Shown here piece after piece: positions 5,553-60,669 of a DNA stretch of 64,000 bases (its first letter is position 1; each line of letters opens with the position of its first letter). A model generated the notes under the pieces. It was not told the origin of the DNA. It did not search any database and saw only the letters and a list, made by a program, of their open reading frames with translations. Origin of the DNA: Piromyces finnis finn (Eukaryota > Fungi > Neocallimastigomycota); contig MCFH01000044.1 in assembly GCA_002104945.1 (NCBI GenBank), positions 372,001 through 436,000 on the forward strand. The letters run 5' to 3'. The position numbers and the translations under genes are program-made.

Positions 5553-7216
5553 ATGAAGATAAACAATCAAACTTTAAAAATGTCTTCATATATAATTCGT
5601 GAATATCCGGGTGTTGCTACATTTTTTTCCTCAAAGGAATATTTAGATATTTATAAAGGTAATGAGATTATATATATTTAAATTATTATTATTATCTATA
5701 AAAATTTCAAATTTTATATAAAATTTCTATCCATAAACAATAATTAATAATTAATAAATAATTTTATATATAAAAATTAGAAATAAATATATTAAGAGCA
5801 ACTGAAGATCCAATTACAGCCCCATTTCAATCTAAATATAAAGTAAATATATACTATATAGTATATATAATAATATATATATAATAGCAAACAATTATAA
5901 TTAAAATATTGATTTCATTTATATAATTTTAACAATAATTATAACAAATATTTTATAATATTTTAATTCAAAATATACGAAAAAAGGCTAGGGAAATCAT
6001 GGTACTTATTTTATTAAAAGAAAAGTAGCTTATATATATAATAAATAATAAATATTTTTTAATATATATATAATCTTTATATAGTTAGATATTAAAGAAA
6101 AGTTTATTGAAAGAGTAAGAACTGGTGCAGAAGAGGTTCCACAAGAAGTATATATTAAGTTTTTTTTTTTTTTTTTTAAAATGAAACTTCCAAAGTGAAA
6201 AAGTTATTATAACCTTTTATTTAAATAATATTTCATTTAGACGGAAGAATTGATATTAGCCTTATTTAACTACCATTTAGGTTTAAATTATATAGAAACT
6301 GATGAAGAATCACCTGGTGAAAAGAATCTTAATGCTAGGTAAATTAATATATAAAAATGCAAAAATTGAAATACTAACAAAAATATATATATATACTAAA
6401 AAATTTATTATTCTAAATAAAAAACTTTCATTAATTTTTAATAAAAAGTGTTTCAGTTTTACGTCAATATGAATTACAACCTCAATTTGTTGCCCATTTA
6501 ATAAATGCTTTAAATCAGCTTGGTATTTTATGGTTTAGTTGGGAGTATGTATAATAGTTATAATAAAAAAAACTCACTTCTTTATATAAATATTAGCATG
6601 AAACATTATTCTAAATATCATGTATATCATATATATAAAGTGATTTTACAAATAAAACTATTACTCCAAAATCCGAAAAATATTTTGAGGAAGCTTATGT
6701 ATGATAATACAATAATAAAATAACTTAATTAAATGTTGATTTTTGAAATATGAAATATGAAAATATAATTATTTAATATTACATTATATTCGTATTATAT
6801 TCATATATATTCATATATACATAATTTGATATAGAAATTATATGAAAAATACAATTATTTAAATAGAAACACCATCCCTACAATTGAGTAATATATCAAT
6901 AATAGAATAATAGCTTATTTGAATATACAAATTAATTAAATAAACTTTAAATTTAATTTTCCATATTAATTAGTATTTTAAACCCATTTGAAGAAGATGA
7001 TGATGAAAAAAAGAGAATGGAAACATTTGAATCATATCATACATTGACTATTTACTATCTTTCACAAGTTTATTCTGCAAAAAATATGAATGATAAATCG
7101 GCAAAATATTCAGCAATGACATTAGATAGGGAGTTAAGACATTCTTCAATTGATCATTATGTAAATATTTTTTTTTAATAACAAATGACGTCATATAGTT
7201 TGAAAAATGTATTAAC

Positions 7217-7252
<36 letters not shown>

Positions 7253-8544
7253 TTAATTTTAATAACAAGAACTGGTGTCTTAATTGCATTAAGCTTGGTC
7301 AATATCACTCTTCTATTCTCGAATTCAAGAATGCTTATCGCTGTTTATGTAATTAATTTAATTTTTTTTATTAATATATTCTTATTAAAATAGTATGTTG
7401 AATTGTTTTTATTTTTATATTAATTTGAAACCAAAAATATAATAAAAAAGCATGTGCTGAATATATGTCGAAAATAATTGATGCCAATAGTACTATTCCG
7501 GAAGATGTTGAAGAAGATCCAATTAAAAAATTAGAAGCAGAGTTAAATTGGAGCTGGGGTAAATTTTATCTTGCTGCTTTGGAGGAAAGCGTGTAAGCAT
7601 TTTGAGGAAAATAAATAATAAATAAAATAAAATTATAATTTTATATATTGGTGTACATTTATTGAATTAAAATTATAAAAATATTAAAATATAAGTAAAC
7701 GTTATGAAAGTGGAAATGTTAAATTTAATTTAAATGAACCAAGGTAAATATATTTATATTACTTTATTAATTTATATATATATTAATTTTTGTTTTTTTC
7801 TTAAACGTTCTTTTTCTTTATATTTATAGTCCTATTGGCCCACAATTATTTAGTGCTTTAACATTTGAATCAAATCGTACTCCAGTTAGATCGAATTTAG
7901 CTACTAATTTTAATGAAGTATATACTTATATAATAATAATAATAATAATAATAATTAAATATTATTACTGATAATTTTTTTCTTTTAAAATTTTTTTAAA
8001 GGCGAAAGAACTATTTATTGAAGGTGTTCAATCTCTTGAAAATTCATTAAACTTTTATATTTTTGATGGTTATGTTTCGGATCATGTTAACATTAATTTA
8101 GTAGGTTTTTTCACCTTTTTCTTTTATATATATATGAGTGCATCTAATAATTCATTAATACAACATATACACTTTTTTTATAGGAAATAAGCAAATTTTA
8201 TAAATTATTATCAGTCTTCCAATTAAATAATAAGGAATGCAGGTAAGCATGAATAATAATAAGATCTTAACATTAAATATATAGAAAAAAATATAAATTA
8301 ATAATAAATATTATTGTTATTATAAATAAAAGCATAATTCATCAAGCACGTATCTCCAGTTTATTACCATTAGAATCACAACTAAGCTTTGAACATTATT
8401 CTCATCTTGTACAATTATTAATTGCTGAAATTGCTAATGCTTATGAGGAATTAGCTAATTGTGAAATTAAATCATTAGAGGAAGAAGAAATAACAGATTT
8501 AAAAGGAAAATATGAAACTGCTAGAAACTCAAATGAATAGTAAT

Positions 8545-8584
<40 letters not shown>

Positions 8585-9315
8585 ATATAATTTAAAAATA
8601 AATATTTAATATTTTATACTATTTTTAAATTAAATTAATATGTTATATGTGAATTATATTATAGCAATTATAAAGCTATTGAATTCCTTGAAGAATATAT
8701 TATATCATTTGCTGATCCAACCCTTAAACGTTTACCTGATCCAATTCCAAAAGCTATCGTTAAAACTATCTTAAATACATGGTGGAAAATGGGTGATTTA
8801 TGGTCAAGAATAATTGTTATTCCAGATGTTGAGAAGGAAGAAAAAGAAAATGAAGTTTCAAGTGATGAATCTATGAAGAGCGAATATTTAGATAATATTC
8901 AAAAGAGGTAAATTCAAATAATTTTAAAAAAGATAATATATATGAAAAATTATATATTAATATAATAATTTAAATTAAAATAGTAAAAAGTTATATGAAG
9001 CTATCGTTAGTTACTGTAAAAAGAATTATGTTCATAAATATGATGATGAGTTAAAGGTAATTAAAGTTAATTATAGAATATATTTATTTCTTAATATATA
9101 AGTTCAATTTTATTAATATAATAAATCATCATTATTATAATAATTTAATCCTTTATGTTTTTTTTTTTTTTTTTTTTTATCGAAATATTATTATTATGCT
9201 TACATATATTAAGACTGTAAAACAATTATTAGAAAATATTGATAAAGAAATTGAAAAAACAACCAACTTAACAAAGTCTGATCATTGGTGTTTGACTTCA
9301 TTACCAATAGTATAA
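5553..9315 (+). CDS. KIFBP: KIF-binding protein (KBP/KIF1BP family, TPR-like kinesin inhibitor), multi-exon
   Basis: Start 5553 (MKINNQTLKMSSYIIREYPG; 5580 is an alternative). Exon peptides resembling KBP: ATEDPITAPFQSKYK, LALFNYHLGLNYIETDEESPGEKNL, ALNQLG, YHTLTIYYLSQVYSA, FYIFDGYVSDHVNINL, LLIAEIANAYEEL. Stop TAA 9313-9315 (..CLTSLPIV*). More than a dozen short GT-AG introns; not every junction was verified. Confidence 0.75.
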
Positions 9316-9429
9316 AATTAAGCTGTGAAATATTCGGGAAAAATTCTTAAAGTTACAATATAAATAAAATGCCAATTATTTAAATTATTTATTGAACAAT
9401 TAAATGTCCTTGACGACAATGTCAAAAAG

Positions 9430-9466
<37 letters not shown>

Positions 9467-9677
9467 ACATAAATATATTAACAATACTAATCAAATTAAT
9501 AACATTAATGAAATATTAGAATAAAAATAGAGAAAAATTATATATTTTGATAAACAAAAATTCAAAAAAGTAAAATAATCTTTTTTTTTTATTTTAATTT
9601 AACTAAGATAAAGTTTTAATATTTTCAATCATAATTATACTAATACCTTAAATACCATCATCAACAACAACAACAGC

Positions 9678-9717
<40 letters not shown>

Positions 9718-9940
9718 GTTAATGCTGTTATATTATTAGAAATATTATTCAAGAAAATTTCTTTAATTTTTAACAGTTTTAATTTTTAATGTATTTTTTT
9801 TACTTTAATTTTATAAAATTAACTACTAAATAAAATAATTATATAAATTTTTTAATTTCGAATATACATATATATTTGTATTAACTAATAATAATTATGT
9901 TTTTTGAAATAAAAATGAAATACAACAAAAGTAATTAAGT

Positions 9941-10068
<128 letters not shown>

Positions 10069-18494: not shown

Positions 18495-20539
18495 ATGTTA
18501 TCTCAAAAATCTTTAAATTGTAAACAAATGATAAAATCTGGTTTCAGAAGAGCAATTGCTCCATCTGTTTCCATGACTACTAGTACTATAGCACTTAATG
18601 CTAAGCGTAACTATTCTAGCAAGTACAAGGATATTATCTTCGCTCAAGAAGGTAGAGACAAGCTTGCTAAGGGTGTTAATATTTTAGCTAAGGCTGTTTC
18701 TGTCACTTTAGGTCCAAAGGGAAGAAACGTATTAATTGGTATGATTAAATAAAAAATTAATAATTATGGAATAAAATTAAATAAAAATTTTTATTATAAA
18801 AAATTTATAAATTTAAATATAAAAATTAATTGAAAATAAATTTTTTATAATTCAAAAAAGAACAAGAATTCGACCCACCAAAGATTACTAAGGATGGTGT
18901 TACAGTTGCTAAATCCATTGAACTTGAAGATAAATTTGAAAATTTAGGTGCTAAAATTGTTCAAGATGTTGCTATCAAAACAAATGATGAAGCAGGTGAT
19001 GGTACCACTACTGCTACAGGTATAATTTATTTATAAAATAAAAAAATTATTAATTAAATATATCAATCTTAATAAAATTAATAAAAAAATAATTATTACA
19101 TTATTAAATATAAATTATTTTAAAATTTTAAAATATTAGTTCTTGCTAGAGCTATTTTTGCTGAAGGTTTAAAGAATGTTTCTGCTGGTGTTAACCCAGT
19201 CGAACTTAGAAGAGGTGTTCAACAAGCTGTTGATGTTGTTGTTGATTTTCTTAAAGAACAAGCCCACTCTATTTCTACTTTTGAAGAAATTGCTCAAGTT
19301 GGTACTATTTCTGCAAATGGTGATAAGCATATTGGTAATCTTTTAGCCGAAGCTATGAAAAAGGTTGGTAAGGAAGGTGTAATTAATATTCATGAAGGTA
19401 AAACTCTTGAAGATGAATTAGTTATTACTGAAGGTATGAAATTCGAAAATGGTTACTTATCTCCACACTTTATTACTGACAATAAGGGTAAAAAATGTGA
19501 ACTTGAAAACCCATATATTTTAATTTGTGAAGAAAAGATTTCTGTTGTTCAAGATATTGTTCCAGCATTAGAAATTGCTGCTAATAACCGTAGACCACTT
19601 TTAATTATTGCTGATGATGTCGAAGGTGACGCTTTAGCTACTTGTGTTCTTAATAAGGTTCGTGGTCAAGTTCAAGTTTGTTGTATTAAGGCTCCAGGAT
19701 ATGGTGATCACCGTAAGAACAATTTAGGTGATATTGCTTGTCTTACTAATTCCACTGTTATGAGCGCTAATGTTGAATTAACTTTAGATAAACTTACTGA
19801 AGAACATCTTGGTACTTGTGAAAGAATTACTGTAACTAGAGAAGATACCGTCTTCTTAAACGGAGCCGGTGATAAAGATAAGATTACTGAAAGATGCAGA
19901 CAAATTAGAAGTATTATTAAGGAAGCAGATCTTTCTATTTATGAAAGAGAAAGACATGAAGAACGTTTAGCTAAATTAACTGGTGGTGTTGCTGTCATTA
20001 AGGTTGGTGGTGTCTCAGAAGTTGAAGTTGGCGAAAGAAAAGATAGATTTGTTGATGCTTTACATGCTACTCGTGCAGCAATTGAAGAAGGTATTGTTCC
20101 AGGAGGTGGTACAGCTTTACTCAAGGCCTCAAAGGTTCTTACCAATTTAAAGGCTGATACTTTTGATCAACAACTTGGTGTTGATCTTGTTAAGAAAGCC
20201 ATTCAAGAACCATGTAAGAAGATTGTTAATAATGCTGGAGGTGAAGGTTCTGTTGTTGTTGGTCGTCTTTACAACAGTTTTGAAGTTAAGGGTGTTGAAG
20301 ACAAGGCCGTTAATAAGAAGGATTACAAACCATTCACTTACGGTTTTGATGCCTACAAGGGTGAATACTGTGATATGCTTAAGGCTGGTATCATTGATCC
20401 AGTTAAAGTTGTTCGTACTGCTATTCTTGATGCTAGTGGTGTTGCTAGTTTATTAACTACTTCTGAATGCATGATTGTTGATGGTGAAGATGAACAACCA
20501 CCAGCTGCTCCAGCTGGTATGCCAATGGGTATGATGTAA
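18495..20539 (+). CDS. HSP60: Mitochondrial-type (hydrogenosomal) chaperonin Hsp60/Cpn60
   Basis: Exons 18495-18738, 18861-19019, 19140-20539. [60 protein letters not shown], Gly/Met C-terminal tail. N-terminal Arg/Ser-rich presequence ending ..AKRNYSS. Confidence 0.97.
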
Positions 20540-33688: not shown

Positions 33689-34555
33689 ATGAAATTTTTT
33701 AATGTAAACCTCAATTCTTTAATTAATGTTTTAATTAATTATTTATTAAAAGAGAATTCTCAAGCTATTGGAATGCTTGATGAAAGTAGTTTTGATGAAA
33801 AATTTAATATATATAAGAGTTTATGTAATGTCCGTTATCCTAATCCAATTTCAAATGAATATTTAGAGAATGAGAGAAAATTTTTTGAAGAATTTAATAA
33901 AATCAGAAACTTACAAACTATTGATAAAATAGAACCAATATCTAACAATTATCCATCAGTAAATACGAAATATAAAAATATATTATCTTTGTGGCAAGGT
34001 GATATTACTACACTAAAAGTTGACGCTATTGTTAATGCTGCTAATTCTCAAGGTTTAGGTTGTTTTCAGCCATCACACATTTGCATTGATAATTTAATAC
34101 ATACTTATGCTGGGGTCGCACTACGTTTAGAATGTAATGAAAAAATGAAAGAAATAAAATACCTTGAGACGGGAAAGGCTTTTATTACAAGTGGACAAAA
34201 TTTACCATCAAAACATGTTATTCATACCGTTGGACCTATAATTGAAAATGATTCTTATAATCATAAACTCCATTCTAATGATTATGGAATTAGTGAATTA
34301 AAAATAAAAGATTTATCAAATTGTTATCTTAATAGTTTAAAATTGGCAAATGAAAATAATCTTAAAACTATTGCCTTCCCATGTATATCTACTGGTCTTT
34401 TTAGATTTCCACAAGAATTAGCATGTAAAATTGCAATAGAGACGGTAATTAAATATCTAAATACCCATGAAAATAATTTTGAAAGAATCATATTTAATGT
34501 ATATAGTGATAAAGATTTATCAATATATGACAACTATATAAAAAATAATTTGTAA
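33689..34555 (+). CDS. Zinc-containing macrodomain (Zn-Macro) protein-ADP-ribose hydrolase, intronless, bacterial-type
   Basis: Macro motifs WQGDITTLKVDAIVNAAN, AFITSGQNLPSKHVIHTVGP, IAFPCISTGLFRFP. Zn-loop LGCFQPSHICIDNLIH (C-H-C ligands). N-terminal helical extension (SLCNVRYPNPISNEYL) typical of SirTM-linked macrodomains. Confidence 0.9.
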   Translation: MKFFNVNLNSLINVLINYLLKENSQAIGMLDESSFDEKFNIYKSLCNVRYPNPISNEYLENERKFFEEFNKIRNLQTIDKIEPISNNYPSVNTKYKNILSLWQGDITTLKVDAIVNAANSQGLGCFQPSHICIDNLIHTYAGVALRLECNEKMKEIKYLETGKAFITSGQNLPSKHVIHTVGPIIENDSYNHKLHSNDYGISELKIKDLSNCYLNSLKLANENNLKTIAFPCISTGLFRFPQELACKIAIETVIKYLNTHENNFERIIFNVYSDKDLSIYDNYIKNNL

Positions 34556-34982
34556 AAATAATAAAAAAAAAATCAAAATTCTTATTATTATCTTATGAAA
34601 ATTATATTATTGCTATTTACTAAGATAACTGTTGACATGTATATATATGTGTGTATATATAATTTGACTATATTTGCCTCACCTTCCTTTTTTTTATTAT
34701 TTTAAGACTTTTTTTTTTAATAAAATAATAAAATTAATTTTATTTTTTCATTAATAAATTAATAAATTATATAATTTTATTCTTATTTAAATATAAATTA
34801 ATTTTTAAATTAAAATAGTTATAATTGTGACTTTAAGTATTATCTATCTTATCCAATATTAAATTAACTAAAATGATATTGTAATTTTAATATTTAATAA
34901 AAATTATAATATTATATAATTAAAAAAAATTATAAAAGAATATAAAGATATTAAGAAAAATTTTATATAATTGTTGATAAAT

Positions 34983-36074
34983 ATGAAAAGTTTTATAATA
35001 AATTCATTTATTTTATTAATAATATGTTATACTGAAATATATTTTATAAAAAATATTATCAAAAATCATTATTACCAAAAAACTGAAGAAAACAATAAAA
35101 AAAATATAAAAGAAGACAATTCATATACCTACAAAGAGAATCAAATTATTAATGAATTAGAATCTTCTGAACCAATGAGCGAATTAGATAAAAAAGTAAA
35201 GATTATTAAAGAATTATTAAATGACTGTGATAGTATTTTAATAGGTGCAGGTGCAGGATTGTCTTTAGCTGCAGGTCTTGATGAAGCTCATTTAAATTTT
35301 GAAGAAACCTTTAAAGATTTTATTGAGGTTTATCACATAAAAGATATTTATAGTGGTGGTTTTCAACCATTCAGTACCCTTGAAGAAAAATGGGGTTATT
35401 TTTCAAGAAATTGTGTTTCTTATATTGATACAAAATCTACTCAATTATACGAAAATATATTAAAACTAGTTAAAAATAAAGAATACTTTGTAATAACAAC
35501 AAATGTAGATGGACATTTTGAAAAGTCTGGCTTCGACACCAATAATATTTTTGCCACTCAAGGTGACTTTATTAATCTTCAATGTTCTGTACCATGTCAT
35601 AATAAATTATATGAATCAATTGATCTTTTAAAAGAAATGGTTAAAAATGCAAAAGGTAGATTTATTCCAACGGAATTAATACCAAAATGTCCAAAATGTG
35701 GAAAACCAATGACAACACATTTAAGAATTGATTCTTCCTTTGTAATGGATGATTATTGGTATCAACAAAATGATGCATATAATAATTTCATTAATAAAAA
35801 TAAGAATAAAAAATTATTATTACTTGAATTTGGCGTTGGTTTTAATACGCCTTCTATTATTCGTTTCCCATTTGAAAGAGAAACACTGAAAAATGAAAAT
35901 TGGAATTTAATTAGATTTAATAAAGATTTTTCAGGATTTGTAGCAAATAATATGGATTCTTCTACTTTAAATGATTGGGATTCCATCAAATCATTAAAAT
36001 TAAAAAACAATTTTCAAAATAGATTTATCCCAATAGCGGATGATATTAATGAAGTAATAAATAAACTATTGTAA
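34983..36074 (+). CDS. Class M sirtuin (SirTM, NAD-dependent mono-ADP-ribosyltransferase), intronless
   Basis: ILIGAGAGLS, ITTNVDGHF, FATQGDF (Gln in place of the catalytic His of deacylase sirtuins, a SirTM hallmark), Zn ligands C-x3-C and CPKC, LLLEFGVGFNTPSIIRFPFE. Start is ATG 34983 (with hydrophobic extension) or ATG 35175 (bacterial-length). Confidence 0.88.
   Translation: MKSFIINSFILLIICYTEIYFIKNIIKNHYYQKTEENNKKNIKEDNSYTYKENQIINELESSEPMSELDKKVKIIKELLNDCDSILIGAGAGLSLAAGLDEAHLNFEETFKDFIEVYHIKDIYSGGFQPFSTLEEKWGYFSRNCVSYIDTKSTQLYENILKLVKNKEYFVITTNVDGHFEKSGFDTNNIFATQGDFINLQCSVPCHNKLYESIDLLKEMVKNAKGRFIPTELIPKCPKCGKPMTTHLRIDSSFVMDDYWYQQNDAYNNFINKNKNKKLLLLEFGVGFNTPSIIRFPFERETLKNENWNLIRFNKDFSGFVANNMDSSTLNDWDSIKSLKLKNNFQNRFIPIADDINEVINKLL

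Positions 36075-58559: not shown

Positions 58560-60669
<2,110 letters not shown>

Follow-up and report, generated by a model that had tools for sequence, protein, structure and literature searches.

An adjacent pair of genes in the window, the 64,000-nt stretch of Piromyces finnis DNA analysed here, encodes a zinc macrodomain of the Zn-Macro type and a class M sirtuin (SirTM), the predicted eraser and writer of an ADP-ribosylation system. We put at roughly three in four the probability that this is a minimal SirTM/Zn-Macro module that was acquired once, now exists as two genes, has been duplicated into pairs A and B and has its A-type writer tethered to a membrane. On this reading, the ancestor of the Neocallimastigomycota would have taken up a minimal two-gene operon on a single occasion, from an anaerobic gut prokaryote whose nearest living kin would be certain uncultured Clostridia along with Methanosphaera. 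The two genes of the operon would since have become separate and host-like in the fungus, intronless and still adjacent, and duplication of this pair would have given rise to the paralogous pairs. The SirTM would use NAD+ to attach one ADP-ribose unit to an acidic residue in a target protein, and the zinc macrodomain would remove it. The pair A writer would have gained a transmembrane-type helix and a flexible linker, its eraser being soluble.

Layout of the locus

The two open reading frames share one orientation (Table 1). Both are colinear end to end with prokaryotic homologues and are therefore intronless, in agreement with the first-pass annotation, which described adjacent, co-oriented, intronless genes about 430 nt apart. 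The frame of ORF2 opens at 34971, ahead of its ATG, and the macrodomain gene, ORF1, lies in genetic linkage upstream on the same strand. A related Piromyces has a spacer of 917 nt, to which only the last ~90 nt of the P. finnis spacer (34881–34971) align, with 75% identity over 92 nt (blastn, E = 1e-10). In both species this block ends just before the ATG, and it is a candidate for the SirTM promoter or 5′ untranslated region.

Two paralogous Zn-Macro/SirTM pairs, A and B, are found in the Neocallimastigomycota. The locus in the window is pair A, and a tblastn search of the window revealed no remnant of pair B. An exact look-up of the 363-residue SirTM in assemblies gave no match.

Table 1. 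Positions of the features of pair A in the window
Feature	Position	Strand	Remarks
Zn-Macro gene (pair A)	33689..34555	+	288 aa + stop; predicted soluble ADP-ribosyl hydrolase (eraser)
Zn-loop C-x4-H-x-C (CFQPSHIC)	34061..34084	+	Read from the sequence; NAAN before, D-x3-H dyad (DNLIH) after
'Intron' of public fused model P0121	34506..35136	+	631 nt; model reproduced exactly; joins 34505 to 35137
Spacer between pair A genes	34556..34982	.	427 nt, 11% GC
SirTM gene (pair A)	34983..36074	+	363 aa + stop; predicted NAD+-dependent protein mono-ADP-ribosyltransferase (writer)
N-terminal hydrophobic helix	34989..35057	+	Residues 3–25, SFIINSFILLIICYTEIYFIKNI; predicted membrane anchor
Low-complexity linker	35058..35174	+	Predicted disordered; pLDDT 50–62
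SirTM catalytic domain	35175..36071	+	Asn174, Gln193, Arg248, four Zn-ribbon cysteines, GVGFNTP; from alignments
FATQGD motif (Gln193)	35550..35567	+	Gln in place of the catalytic His (QG not HG)
GVGFNTP motif	35832..35852	+	Within the SirTM catalytic domain

Identity of the two proteins

ORF1 matches the Pfam Macro profile (PF01661) with an E value of 7.9e-33 and NCBIfam NF003163, 'protein-ADP-ribose hydrolase', with 278.6 bits, the cut-off being 272. Its closest solved structures are MorMacro (PDB 8RSI; 1e-61) and SauMacro (5KIV; 5.7e-57), and the alignments to these, which start at residues 9–12, appear to cover the N-terminal three-helix bundle extension of ~95 residues. The sequence CFQPSHIC, which the first-pass annotation had taken for the Zn-loop, follows the published definition of that motif (PMC11490716) and stands where a glycine-rich catalytic loop would be. 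It is accompanied by VNAANS, DNLIH and CISTGLFRFP, which supply the NAAN motif, the D-x3-H dyad and the active-site arene, respectively. The Zn-loop is identical throughout 15 fungal macrodomain copies, NAAN and D-x3-H are likewise invariant, and most of the A and B copies in fungi share the C-terminus, IKNNL followed by the stop codon. These comparisons confirm ORF1 as a zinc macrodomain of the Zn-Macro family, MacroD-type, and suggest that it acts as an ADP-ribosyl hydrolase.

ORF2 matches SpySirTM (5A3A) with an E value of 1.4e-44. Gln193 aligns to Gln137 of SpySirTM and is unchanged in 37 sequences, as the His-to-Gln signature recognised earlier would have it. Also invariant in the alignments are Asn174, Arg248 and GVGFNTP, the equivalents of Asn118, Arg192 and the GVGx[NT]TP motif in SpySirTM; the roles of the catalytic residues have been described (PMC4518038). 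An AlphaFold model of the protein has a pLDDT of 89, rising to ~97 over the catalytic domain, and contains the sirtuin fold, a Rossmann domain with a Zn-ribbon and four conserved cysteines. The best Foldseek match of the model is again 5A3A (E = 3.7e-27, TM 0.88, rmsd 2.2). ORF2 is confirmed by these matches as a class M sirtuin and is predicted to act as an ADP-ribosyltransferase. At such scores, the match of either ORF to its family cannot be due to chance, and the earlier description of a Zn-Macro/SirTM pair of the predicted writer/eraser type holds. Both genes are under strong purifying selection: dN/dS against the Piromyces relative is 0.096 for the macrodomain, and it is 0.134 for the catalytic part of SirTM, at dS ~0.7.

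A 22-residue segment at the C-terminus of SirTM was considered as a synapomorphy with Methanosphaera and rejected, the same segment being present in several Clostridia and Bacilli.

Evidence for two separate genes

In GenBank, the locus is annotated as one fused protein of 584 residues (P0121), whose 'intron' removes the C-terminus of the macrodomain, the stop codon, the spacer and the N-terminal helix of SirTM. If this GenBank/JGI model were correct, splicing would yield a single macrodomain–SirTM fusion resembling Mfs1, and the stop codon and hydrophobic segment would be intronic. Such a product is not without precedent, as the two domains are naturally fused in Mfs1 and in a 572-residue metagenomic family; the boundaries are GT...AG, the frame is preserved, and the public model for A. 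robustus (P0127) is fused as well. However, the 'introns' of the two models measure 631 and 1874 nt, compared with 85–140 nt for local introns, and their donors are GTGATA and GTTTTA. The junctions are unlike in the two species, as is expected of homology-guided gene prediction. Moreover, splicing would discard both the conserved C-terminal helix of the macrodomain and a hydrophobic N-terminus of SirTM that is conserved in four genera.

The arrangement of the genes in related fungi also argues against a fusion. The spacer is 0.43, 0.92, 1.35 and 3.8 kb long in four species, and the 3.8-kb spacer, that of N. lanati, contains a gene on the opposite strand. The pair B genes of A. robustus lie head to head and are divergently oriented. 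Ahead of the catalytic domain, the SirTM frame runs without a stop for 64–223 codons through DNA with a GC content of 11–13%. Contigs of ~1–1.5 kb from JGI and Logan, whose sizes and ends suggest that they are transcripts, bear just one gene of the pair; two such contigs from different samples have an identical 5′ end, and no fused product was found among the transcript-sized contigs. Overall, we consider a spliced fusion unlikely and judge the 'intron' to be an annotation artefact. The separate ORFs are conserved across fungi, and the most likely reading of the sequences, despite the public annotation, is that Zn-Macro and SirTM are separate genes, which we would expect to give rise to separate mRNAs. 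The description of the pair as unfused thus stands at the level of the ORFs, with a conserved stop codon, a spacer and independently conserved termini, although the public record for the locus is a fused protein. The fused 'A1pp-domain' proteins of two public genomes are probably mis-annotated.

A second possible donor, GTAAAA at the macrodomain stop codon, would permit an in-frame fusion to 34991. It was treated as a chance occurrence because relatives (locus L010 and A. robustus) do not share the GT.

Phylogeny and origin of the pair

Homologues with 63–87% identity come from Neocallimastigomycota only; the next best, at ~50%, are prokaryotic and include Methanosphaera, and no other eukaryote is present among the best 120 matches of either protein. 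In a concatenated tree, the Neocallimastigomycota copies are monophyletic with support of 100/100, on a stem branch of length 0.5, and lie inside a 100/99 clade with the pairs of two Methanosphaera and two uncultured gut Clostridia (L015 and L018). The single-gene trees agree. Fungal monophyly within a strongly supported prokaryotic clade indicates a single horizontal acquisition, apparently from an anaerobic gut prokaryote, and these sequences would narrow the donor lineage down to a clade of 11 members. The Methanosphaera pairs may in turn derive from Firmicutes. The proposal of an ameliorated transfer from a gut prokaryote, with the macro-then-SirTM order retained, is upheld by this position, by host-like base composition (below) and by identical gene order; linkage of the two genes is kept across four fungal genera. 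The Staphylococcus/Streptococcus type, on the other hand, is not the closest kin, the nearest named relatives being Methanosphaera, which are archaea, together with the uncultured Clostridia. Across the literature consulted, including the supplement of one preprint on horizontal gene transfer, there was no mention of SirTM or Zn-Macro in Neocallimastigomycota, nor any information about lipoylation in them.

The alternative of vertical descent, in which the pair would be ancient in fungi or eukaryotes, a relative of ascomycete Mfs1 kept by Neocallimastigomycota in its unfused ancestral state, can draw on the length of the fungal stem branch and on a published Zn-Macro tree with archaeal and fungal (Mfs1) branches as sisters (PMC11490716). 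Our trees compare the Neocallimastigomycota with prokaryotes; Mfs1 was set against the pair by pairwise comparison, in which it lies far apart. Identity is ~50% to Methanosphaera and Clostridia, as opposed to ~24% to Foc1Mfs1 in a structure-based alignment, and the bit scores of the latter are the lowest of the solved Zn-Macro and SirTM structures (86.7 and 133.5 for ascomycete Mfs1, compared with 156 for SpySirTM and 212 for MorMacro). Given also the lack of other eukaryotes in those best 120 matches of either protein and the nesting of the fungi in a prokaryotic subclade, we regard vertical descent as very improbable.

The pair is integrated in fungal chromosomes. As the first-pass annotation had observed, the flanking genes bear introns and the codons are as AT-rich as those of the host: spliceosomal introns of ~85–140 nt separate the exons of the neighbouring cyclase and interrupt the genes for Cpn60 and Hsp70, and GC3 is 0.130 and 0.135 for the pair versus 0.131–0.143 in neighbouring host genes. 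In A. robustus and N. lanati the pair likewise lies on large scaffolds, and in the Piromyces relative on contigs of 13–20 kb; orthologues occur in at least four fungal assemblies. Prokaryotic kinship and the want of introns might otherwise have pointed to bacterial or archaeal contamination, or to a decaying, non-functional relic of transfer. This reading is effectively refuted by the host-like GC3 and intron-bearing eukaryotic neighbours on either side, by the orthologues and by a dN/dS of ~0.1 with all catalytic motifs invariant. Horizontal acquisition of the pair would add a signalling module to the genes that anaerobic fungi have gained from other inhabitants of the gut, and the closest relatives of the pair include the fungi's methanogen partners.

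The N-terminal extension of the A-type SirTM

Upstream of its catalytic domain, the A-type SirTM carries an extension of 64 residues in P. finnis and up to 223 in relatives. Neither the 80 prokaryotic loci examined nor the best database matches have such an extension, and the first-pass annotation had noted neither it nor the A/B paralogy. The extension opens with a hydrophobic segment whose 19-residue Kyte–Doolittle mean is 2.05; across four genera, six further A-type proteins have values of 1.96–2.37. AlphaFold predicts a helix at residues 2–41 (pLDDT 85–94). For the hydrophobic segment, pN/pS is mostly below 1, although over 23 codons the estimate is noisy (0.3–2.5). Hydropathy and the predicted helix, on which our transmembrane prediction is based, suggest that the segment is probably a membrane anchor. 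With this helix and the flexible linker, the writer is probably tethered to a membrane, its catalytic domain facing the cytosol.

The opposite topology, with the segment serving as a signal peptide or type II anchor and the catalytic domain in the lumen or outside the cell, apart from a cytosolic macrodomain, has to be considered, as the hydrophobic stretch is N-terminal and about 20 residues long. Many proteins acquired horizontally by anaerobic gut fungi are secreted. Basic residues are, however, commoner after the helix than before it (KNIIKNH, KKVYQHHK), and by the positive-inside rule this excess favours a cytosolic C-terminal domain. There is no evident small-residue cleavage motif, the cofactor NAD+ is found in the cytosol or in organelles, and the macrodomain eraser has no targeting signal. 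A lumenal or secreted catalytic domain is, on this evidence, quite unlikely, and we prefer a cytosolic one.

More tentatively, and with the odds against the reading as a whole, SirTM-A might sit on the cytosolic face of the endoplasmic reticulum or hydrogenosome and modify a membrane-proximal, possibly non-lipoylated target, the modification being reversed by the soluble macrodomain. On that reading, SirTM signalling would for the first time be confined to one compartment, and the system would be a eukaryotic equivalent of Mfs1 in unfused form. The coexistence of a soluble SirTM paralogue (B) with a probably membrane-anchored one (A) amounts to a built-in natural experiment that could help to locate substrates.

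Genes neighbouring the pair

The first-pass annotation had described the pair as lacking its usual partner genes. Among the 77 ORFs of the window that reach 60 residues, the GCV_H, BPL_LplA_LipB and lipoyl-domain Pfam profiles gave no match, at a sensitivity that would miss short exons; this is in keeping with that description. It does not follow that partners were lost. No GcvH-L or LplA lies beside the pair in Methanosphaera (L014), in the Clostridia (L015 and L018), in L020 or in L066, the last being Streptococcus porci, where the extended operon was expected and was not found within 8 kb. As the nearest prokaryotic loci are already minimal pairs, the absence of partners would have been inherited. 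The pair-only 'minimal operon' is a published configuration (PMC11490716), and in published assays GcvH-L was not demodified by the macrodomains of minimal operons or of fusions. The lipoyl-carrier mechanism is thus not simply transferable to the fungal pair, and the question of the target belongs to the whole subclade.

In the nearest prokaryotes, the pair is adjoined by genes for glutathione peroxidase and HxlR-family regulators. The SirTM/Zn-Macro system has been linked to oxidative stress (PMC4518038, PMC11490716), and by analogy the fungal pair might have some connection with oxidative or electrophile stress.

Comparison with known systems

The closest counterpart is the minimal prokaryotic operon of Methanobrevibacter oralis, the source of MorMacro, and of Methanosphaera. 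It consists of two genes only, macrodomain then SirTM, has all its catalytic motifs in common with the fungal pair and provides, in MorMacro, the best solved match of the fungal macrodomain; the Methanosphaera pairs, which share a strongly supported clade with the fungal pair, have no linked GcvH-L or LplA. The genes of the prokaryotic operon overlap, whereas those of the fungi are eukaryotic, predicted to be monocistronic and 0.4–3.8 kb apart. The fungal pair differs further in its duplication into A and B and in the N-terminal hydrophobic helix and low-complexity linker of the A-type SirTM. It would represent the minimal class, unfused, in a eukaryote.

In the extended operon of Staphylococcus aureus and Streptococcus pyogenes, SirTM and Zn-Macro are encoded with GcvH-L, LplA2 and oxidoreductases. 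Both enzyme families and their catalytic residues are shared with the fungal pair, but this operon is phylogenetically farther from it, and the partner genes are absent from the window and from the nearest prokaryotic loci. Lipoylated GcvH-L of the extended operon is the single known substrate of SirTM/Zn-Macro systems; what the minimal pairs and fungal Mfs1 act on is acknowledged in the literature as a question still to be answered (PMC11490716, PMC13720257).

Mfs1 (8RSN), the macrodomain-fused SirTM of Dikarya that is found also in Entamoeba and Phytophthora, is likewise eukaryotic, has both domains in the same order and has been proposed to take part in the response to oxidative stress. It is a single polypeptide, whereas the ORFs of the anaerobic fungal pair are split by a conserved stop codon and a spacer; it is far more divergent in sequence, and it has no described membrane anchor, in contrast to the one predicted for A-type SirTM. 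A search with the A. robustus fused model returned mostly members of the 572-residue metagenomic family of SirTM–macrodomain fusions.

A zinc macrodomain and a SirTM sirtuin, probably encoded by two adjacent genes

The first-pass annotation had described two co-oriented open reading frames (ORFs), and both are present exactly as described, in a window of about 19% GC. ORF1 encodes a macrodomain (Pfam PF01661, E 7.9e-33) and scores 278.6 bits against the NCBIfam equivalog NF003163, 'protein-ADP-ribose hydrolase', above the curated cut-off of 272. Its best solved relatives, from Methanobrevibacter oralis (8RSI, 1e-61) and Staphylococcus aureus (5KIV, 5.7e-57), are both zinc macrodomains. ORF2 matches the ADP-ribosylating sirtuin SirTM of Streptococcus pyogenes (5A3A, 1.4e-44) and, more weakly, the macro-fused SirTM of Fusarium (8RSN, 1.9e-23). 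With its start taken, as for a eukaryote, at ATG 34983, it lies 427 nt beyond the stop of ORF1.

Features of the window, in order of position
Feature	Position	Strand	Remarks
Cpn60-family chaperonin	18851-20536	+	exons 18851-19033, 19124-20536
ORF1, Zn-Macro	33689-34555	+	288 aa
Zn-loop CFQPSHIC	34061-34084		
ORF2, SirTM	34971/34983-36074	+	363 aa from ATG 34983
FATQGD (contains Gln193)	35550-35567		
Hsp70	58563-60669	-	exons 60337-60669, 58563-60233; PF00012, E 1e-238

SirTM proteins are marked by Asn118, Gln137 in place of the catalytic His, Arg192 and GVGx[NT]TP (Rack et al. 2015, PMC4518038); the fungal protein carries Asn174, Gln193, Arg248 and GVGFNTP, with no variation at these positions in two alignments, one of 20 and one of 37 sequences. 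For Zn-Macros, Ariza et al. 2024 (PMC11490716) list a Zn-loop of the form C-x4-H-x-C, the NAAN motif, the dyad D-x3-H and a bundle of helices at the N-terminus. The fungal macrodomain has the Zn-loop, VNAANS and DNLIH, and aligns with bacterial Zn-Macros from residues 9-12 of the latter onward. The CFQPSHIC and FATQGD signatures noted earlier are borne out. The AlphaFold model of the SirTM has a mean pLDDT of 89 (about 97 in the catalytic domain), and a structure search with it returned 5A3A first (TM 0.88, rmsd 2.2 Å) and Fusarium Mfs1, a macro-SirTM fusion, second. The dyad His is kept in all fungal macro copies (DN[LI]IH); D-x3-N (DNQIN) replaces D-x3-H in several of the closest prokaryotic Zn-Macros (mg_P0052, L014 of Methanosphaera, L018 of an uncultured Clostridia).

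Residence in the fungal chromosome

Three introns, each about 85-140 nt long and bounded by GT...AG, interrupt a cyclase gene near the pair, and the Cpn60 and Hsp70 genes are also split, so that the flanking genes do contain spliceosomal introns, as had been claimed. Codon usage is likewise host-like: GC3 is 0.130 for the macro gene and 0.135 for the SirTM gene, against 0.131-0.143 for host genes and about 0.30 for the Methanosphaera pair. Orthologues were located on large scaffolds in both Anaeromyces robustus and Neocallimastix lanati, and a Piromyces relative has them on contigs of 13-20 kb. On these grounds we place the pair in fungal chromosomal DNA and rule out contamination. Both genes are constrained, with dN/dS against the Piromyces relative of 0.096 (macro) and 0.134 (SirTM) at a dS of 0.63-0.77.

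The Cpn60 and Hsp70 genes, each interrupted by an intron of some 90-100 nt, lie in GC-richer islands, and a Cpn10 match was found among the window ORFs. These could be organellar (hydrogenosomal) chaperones clustered within one 64-kb window.

One gene or two

Public gene models fuse both domains into one protein, of 584 aa in P. finnis (a GenBank entry, P0121, identical in sequence to the two window ORFs, which identifies the window as Piromyces finnis) and 550 aa in A. robustus, and both could be reproduced exactly. These two models speak for a single macro-SirTM gene. However, they require introns of 631 nt (34505 joined to 35137, donor GTGATA) and 1874 nt (donor GTTTTA), whereas local introns span only 85-140 nt, and they remove the C-terminal helix of the macrodomain as well as 50-185 codons from the start of the SirTM ORF. 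IKNNL and a stop end the macro ORF in most fungal copies of two paralogous pairs, A (that of the window) and B. Ahead of the catalytic domain, 64-223 codons of the SirTM ORF are free of stops. The DNA there has a GC content of 11-13%, at which stops are frequent, and 64 open codons are estimated to arise by chance with a probability of <1e-3. A synteny check found the two genes linked in other Neocallimastigomycota: the gap, 0.43 kb in P. finnis, measures 0.92 kb in the Piromyces relative and 1.35 kb in A. robustus, and in N. lanati it reaches 3.8 kb and has an opposite-strand gene inside; pair B of A. robustus is arranged head to head. When the spacers of the two Piromyces species are compared, only about 90 nt can be aligned; they lie directly ahead of the SirTM ATG, as might be expected of a promoter or 5' UTR. 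Contigs of 0.9-1.5 kb hold one gene each, and two of these from different samples have starts within one base of each other. Among database matches of both proteins, no fused product was found besides the two gene models. Judging from the sequences, we put the probability at roughly four in five that the genes are separate and the fused models artefacts of homology-guided prediction. The conserved stop, varying gaps and head-to-head pair B uphold, at the level of ORFs, the description of the pair as unfused.

GTAAAA at 34551-34556, like local intron donors, overlaps the macro stop codon; paired with the AG at 34989-34990 it would define a 438-nt intron that keeps the reading frame and links the macrodomain to the SirTM hydrophobic segment. 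It is probably a chance occurrence, as the GT is not conserved in relatives. Separately, metagenome contigs (the longest 632 kb) carry a very abundant family of 572-aa SirTM-macro fusions (P0262-P0373, e.g. P0357), residues ~30-290 forming the SirTM part and ~320-570 the Zn-Macro part; they are about 46% identical to the fungal proteins. Their domain order is opposite to that of Mfs1.

Duplication and an N-terminal extension

Pair B SirTMs have about 300 aa, as in prokaryotes, and those of pair A group together within the B sequences with 100/100 support. In the Piromyces relative (L094:6851-17473, L002:2354-7110) macro-B comes first; some 7 kb with a DUF218 gene and small ORFs separate it from SirTM-B, after which come macro-A and SirTM-A. 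Pair B is thus pulled apart, with SirTM-B directly upstream of pair A. Methanobrevibacter olleyae offers a prokaryotic parallel to this one-macro, two-SirTM layout (L030:7055-10006), one macro gene being followed by tandem SirTM genes at 7836-8903 and 9104-10006. Ankyrin-repeat genes flank the pair cluster in the Piromyces relative, the window and A. robustus (L099). The P. finnis window holds pair A only, with no remnant of pair B found in it.

A hydrophobic N-terminal segment, SFIINSFILLIICYTEIYFIKNI in the window SirTM, is conserved in seven of the nine A-type SirTMs examined, from four genera. Its Kyte-Doolittle 19-residue mean is 1.96-2.37, a value that in the catalytic domain does not exceed 1.25. 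Counted with its low-complexity linker, the extension covers 64-223 residues, and AlphaFold predicts a confident helix at residues 2-41 and a low-confidence linker. Values of pN/pS for the segment are noisy, mostly 0.3-0.8. Basic residues are more numerous after the helix than before it; under the positive-inside rule this speaks for a catalytic domain in the cytosol. No such extension was found in 80 prokaryotic loci or the other best database matches, and the segment is probably a membrane anchor gained in the fungus.

Origin of the pair

Among the matches listed, those above about 60% identity come, for both proteins, only from Neocallimastigomycota (Piromyces, Anaeromyces, Neocallimastix, rumen and faecal contigs); the next, at 48-59%, come from prokaryotes, several Methanosphaera proteins among them. 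A scan of one prokaryotic genome per species gave the 80 loci, the best from Methanosphaera sp. SHI613 (49%, 2e-90). In nearly all, the macro gene directly precedes or overlaps the SirTM gene, an order kept in the fungus, as the first-pass annotation proposed. In a concatenated tree (55 rows, 541 columns, LG+C20) the fungal sequences form one clade (100/100), with which single-gene trees agree, nested in a clade (100/99) that also holds two pairs from Methanosphaera and two from uncultured Clostridia (L015, L018). This accords with the proposed horizontal transfer from a gut prokaryote. The tree does not order the members of the 100/99 clade. The donor can be narrowed only to a gut anaerobe of that subclade, and Methanosphaera may itself be a recipient. 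The trees covered gut fungal and prokaryotic sequences; judged from the solved structures, vertical kinship with ascomycete Mfs1 is unlikely, its structure being the most distant solved relative of both domains. One bacterial SirTM homologue (P0137, 408 aa, ENA contig) repeats about 110 residues, from Zn-ribbon to GVGFNTP, which may reflect either an assembly error or a genuine tandem duplication.

Partner genes and possible role

Of the ORFs in the window, the 77 with 60 aa or more gave no match to GCV_H, lipoate-ligase or lipoyl-domain models, so the reported lack of GcvH-L and LplA stands for these ORFs. Such genes were likewise not found beside the pair in the closest prokaryotic loci. Extended operon, pair-only operon and fusion have already been distinguished, and macrodomains of the latter two are reported not to demodify GcvH-L but to remove Asp/Glu-linked ADP-ribose (PMC11490716). 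Since the pair-only operon is published and the closest loci share the absence, we take this to be the inherited state of the subclade; the substrate question is general to pair-only systems rather than peculiar to the fungus.

The Methanosphaera pair L014 neighbours a cation-efflux gene and a glutathione peroxidase gene, the latter (5569-6105) after the pair. HxlR-family regulators and GNAT acetyltransferases adjoin the pairs of L015, L018, L020 and Streptococcus porci L066; the HxlR-family (DUF24-type) genes, L015:6001-6333(-), L018:6500-6820(-), L020:6887-7207(+) and L066:7479-7823(-), are directly beside the minimal pair in four unrelated Firmicutes loci. The HxlR and peroxidase genes hint that pair-only operons are redox- or electrophile-regulated.

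We propose that SirTM would use NAD+ to mono-ADP-ribosylate an acidic residue of a target protein, the pair A enzyme acting at a membrane surface, and that the soluble Zn-Macro would take the mark off. Going by literature on other SirTM systems and by the redox genes beside prokaryotic relatives, the pair may have a role in oxidative or electrophile stress, which would be plausible in an oxygen-sensitive fungus.

Comparison with known systems

The literature searched holds no mention of the system in Neocallimastigomycota, and GenBank lists the fungal proteins under generic names, two as fused models. The SirTM/Zn-Macro system and its pair-only form are known, and the fungal pair is a eukaryotic version of the latter; what is probably new is that the minimal pair is here eukaryotic, unfused and duplicated, and has a writer predicted to be membrane-anchored. 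It resembles the minimal pairs of Methanosphaera, L015 and L018 in gene order and absence of partners. The prokaryotic SirTMs examined are without the N-terminal extension, whereas most fungal A-type SirTMs examined have a hydrophobic segment and linker; and whereas SirTM is fused to the macrodomain in Mfs1, the fungal pair consists of two ORFs with a stop and a spacer between them.
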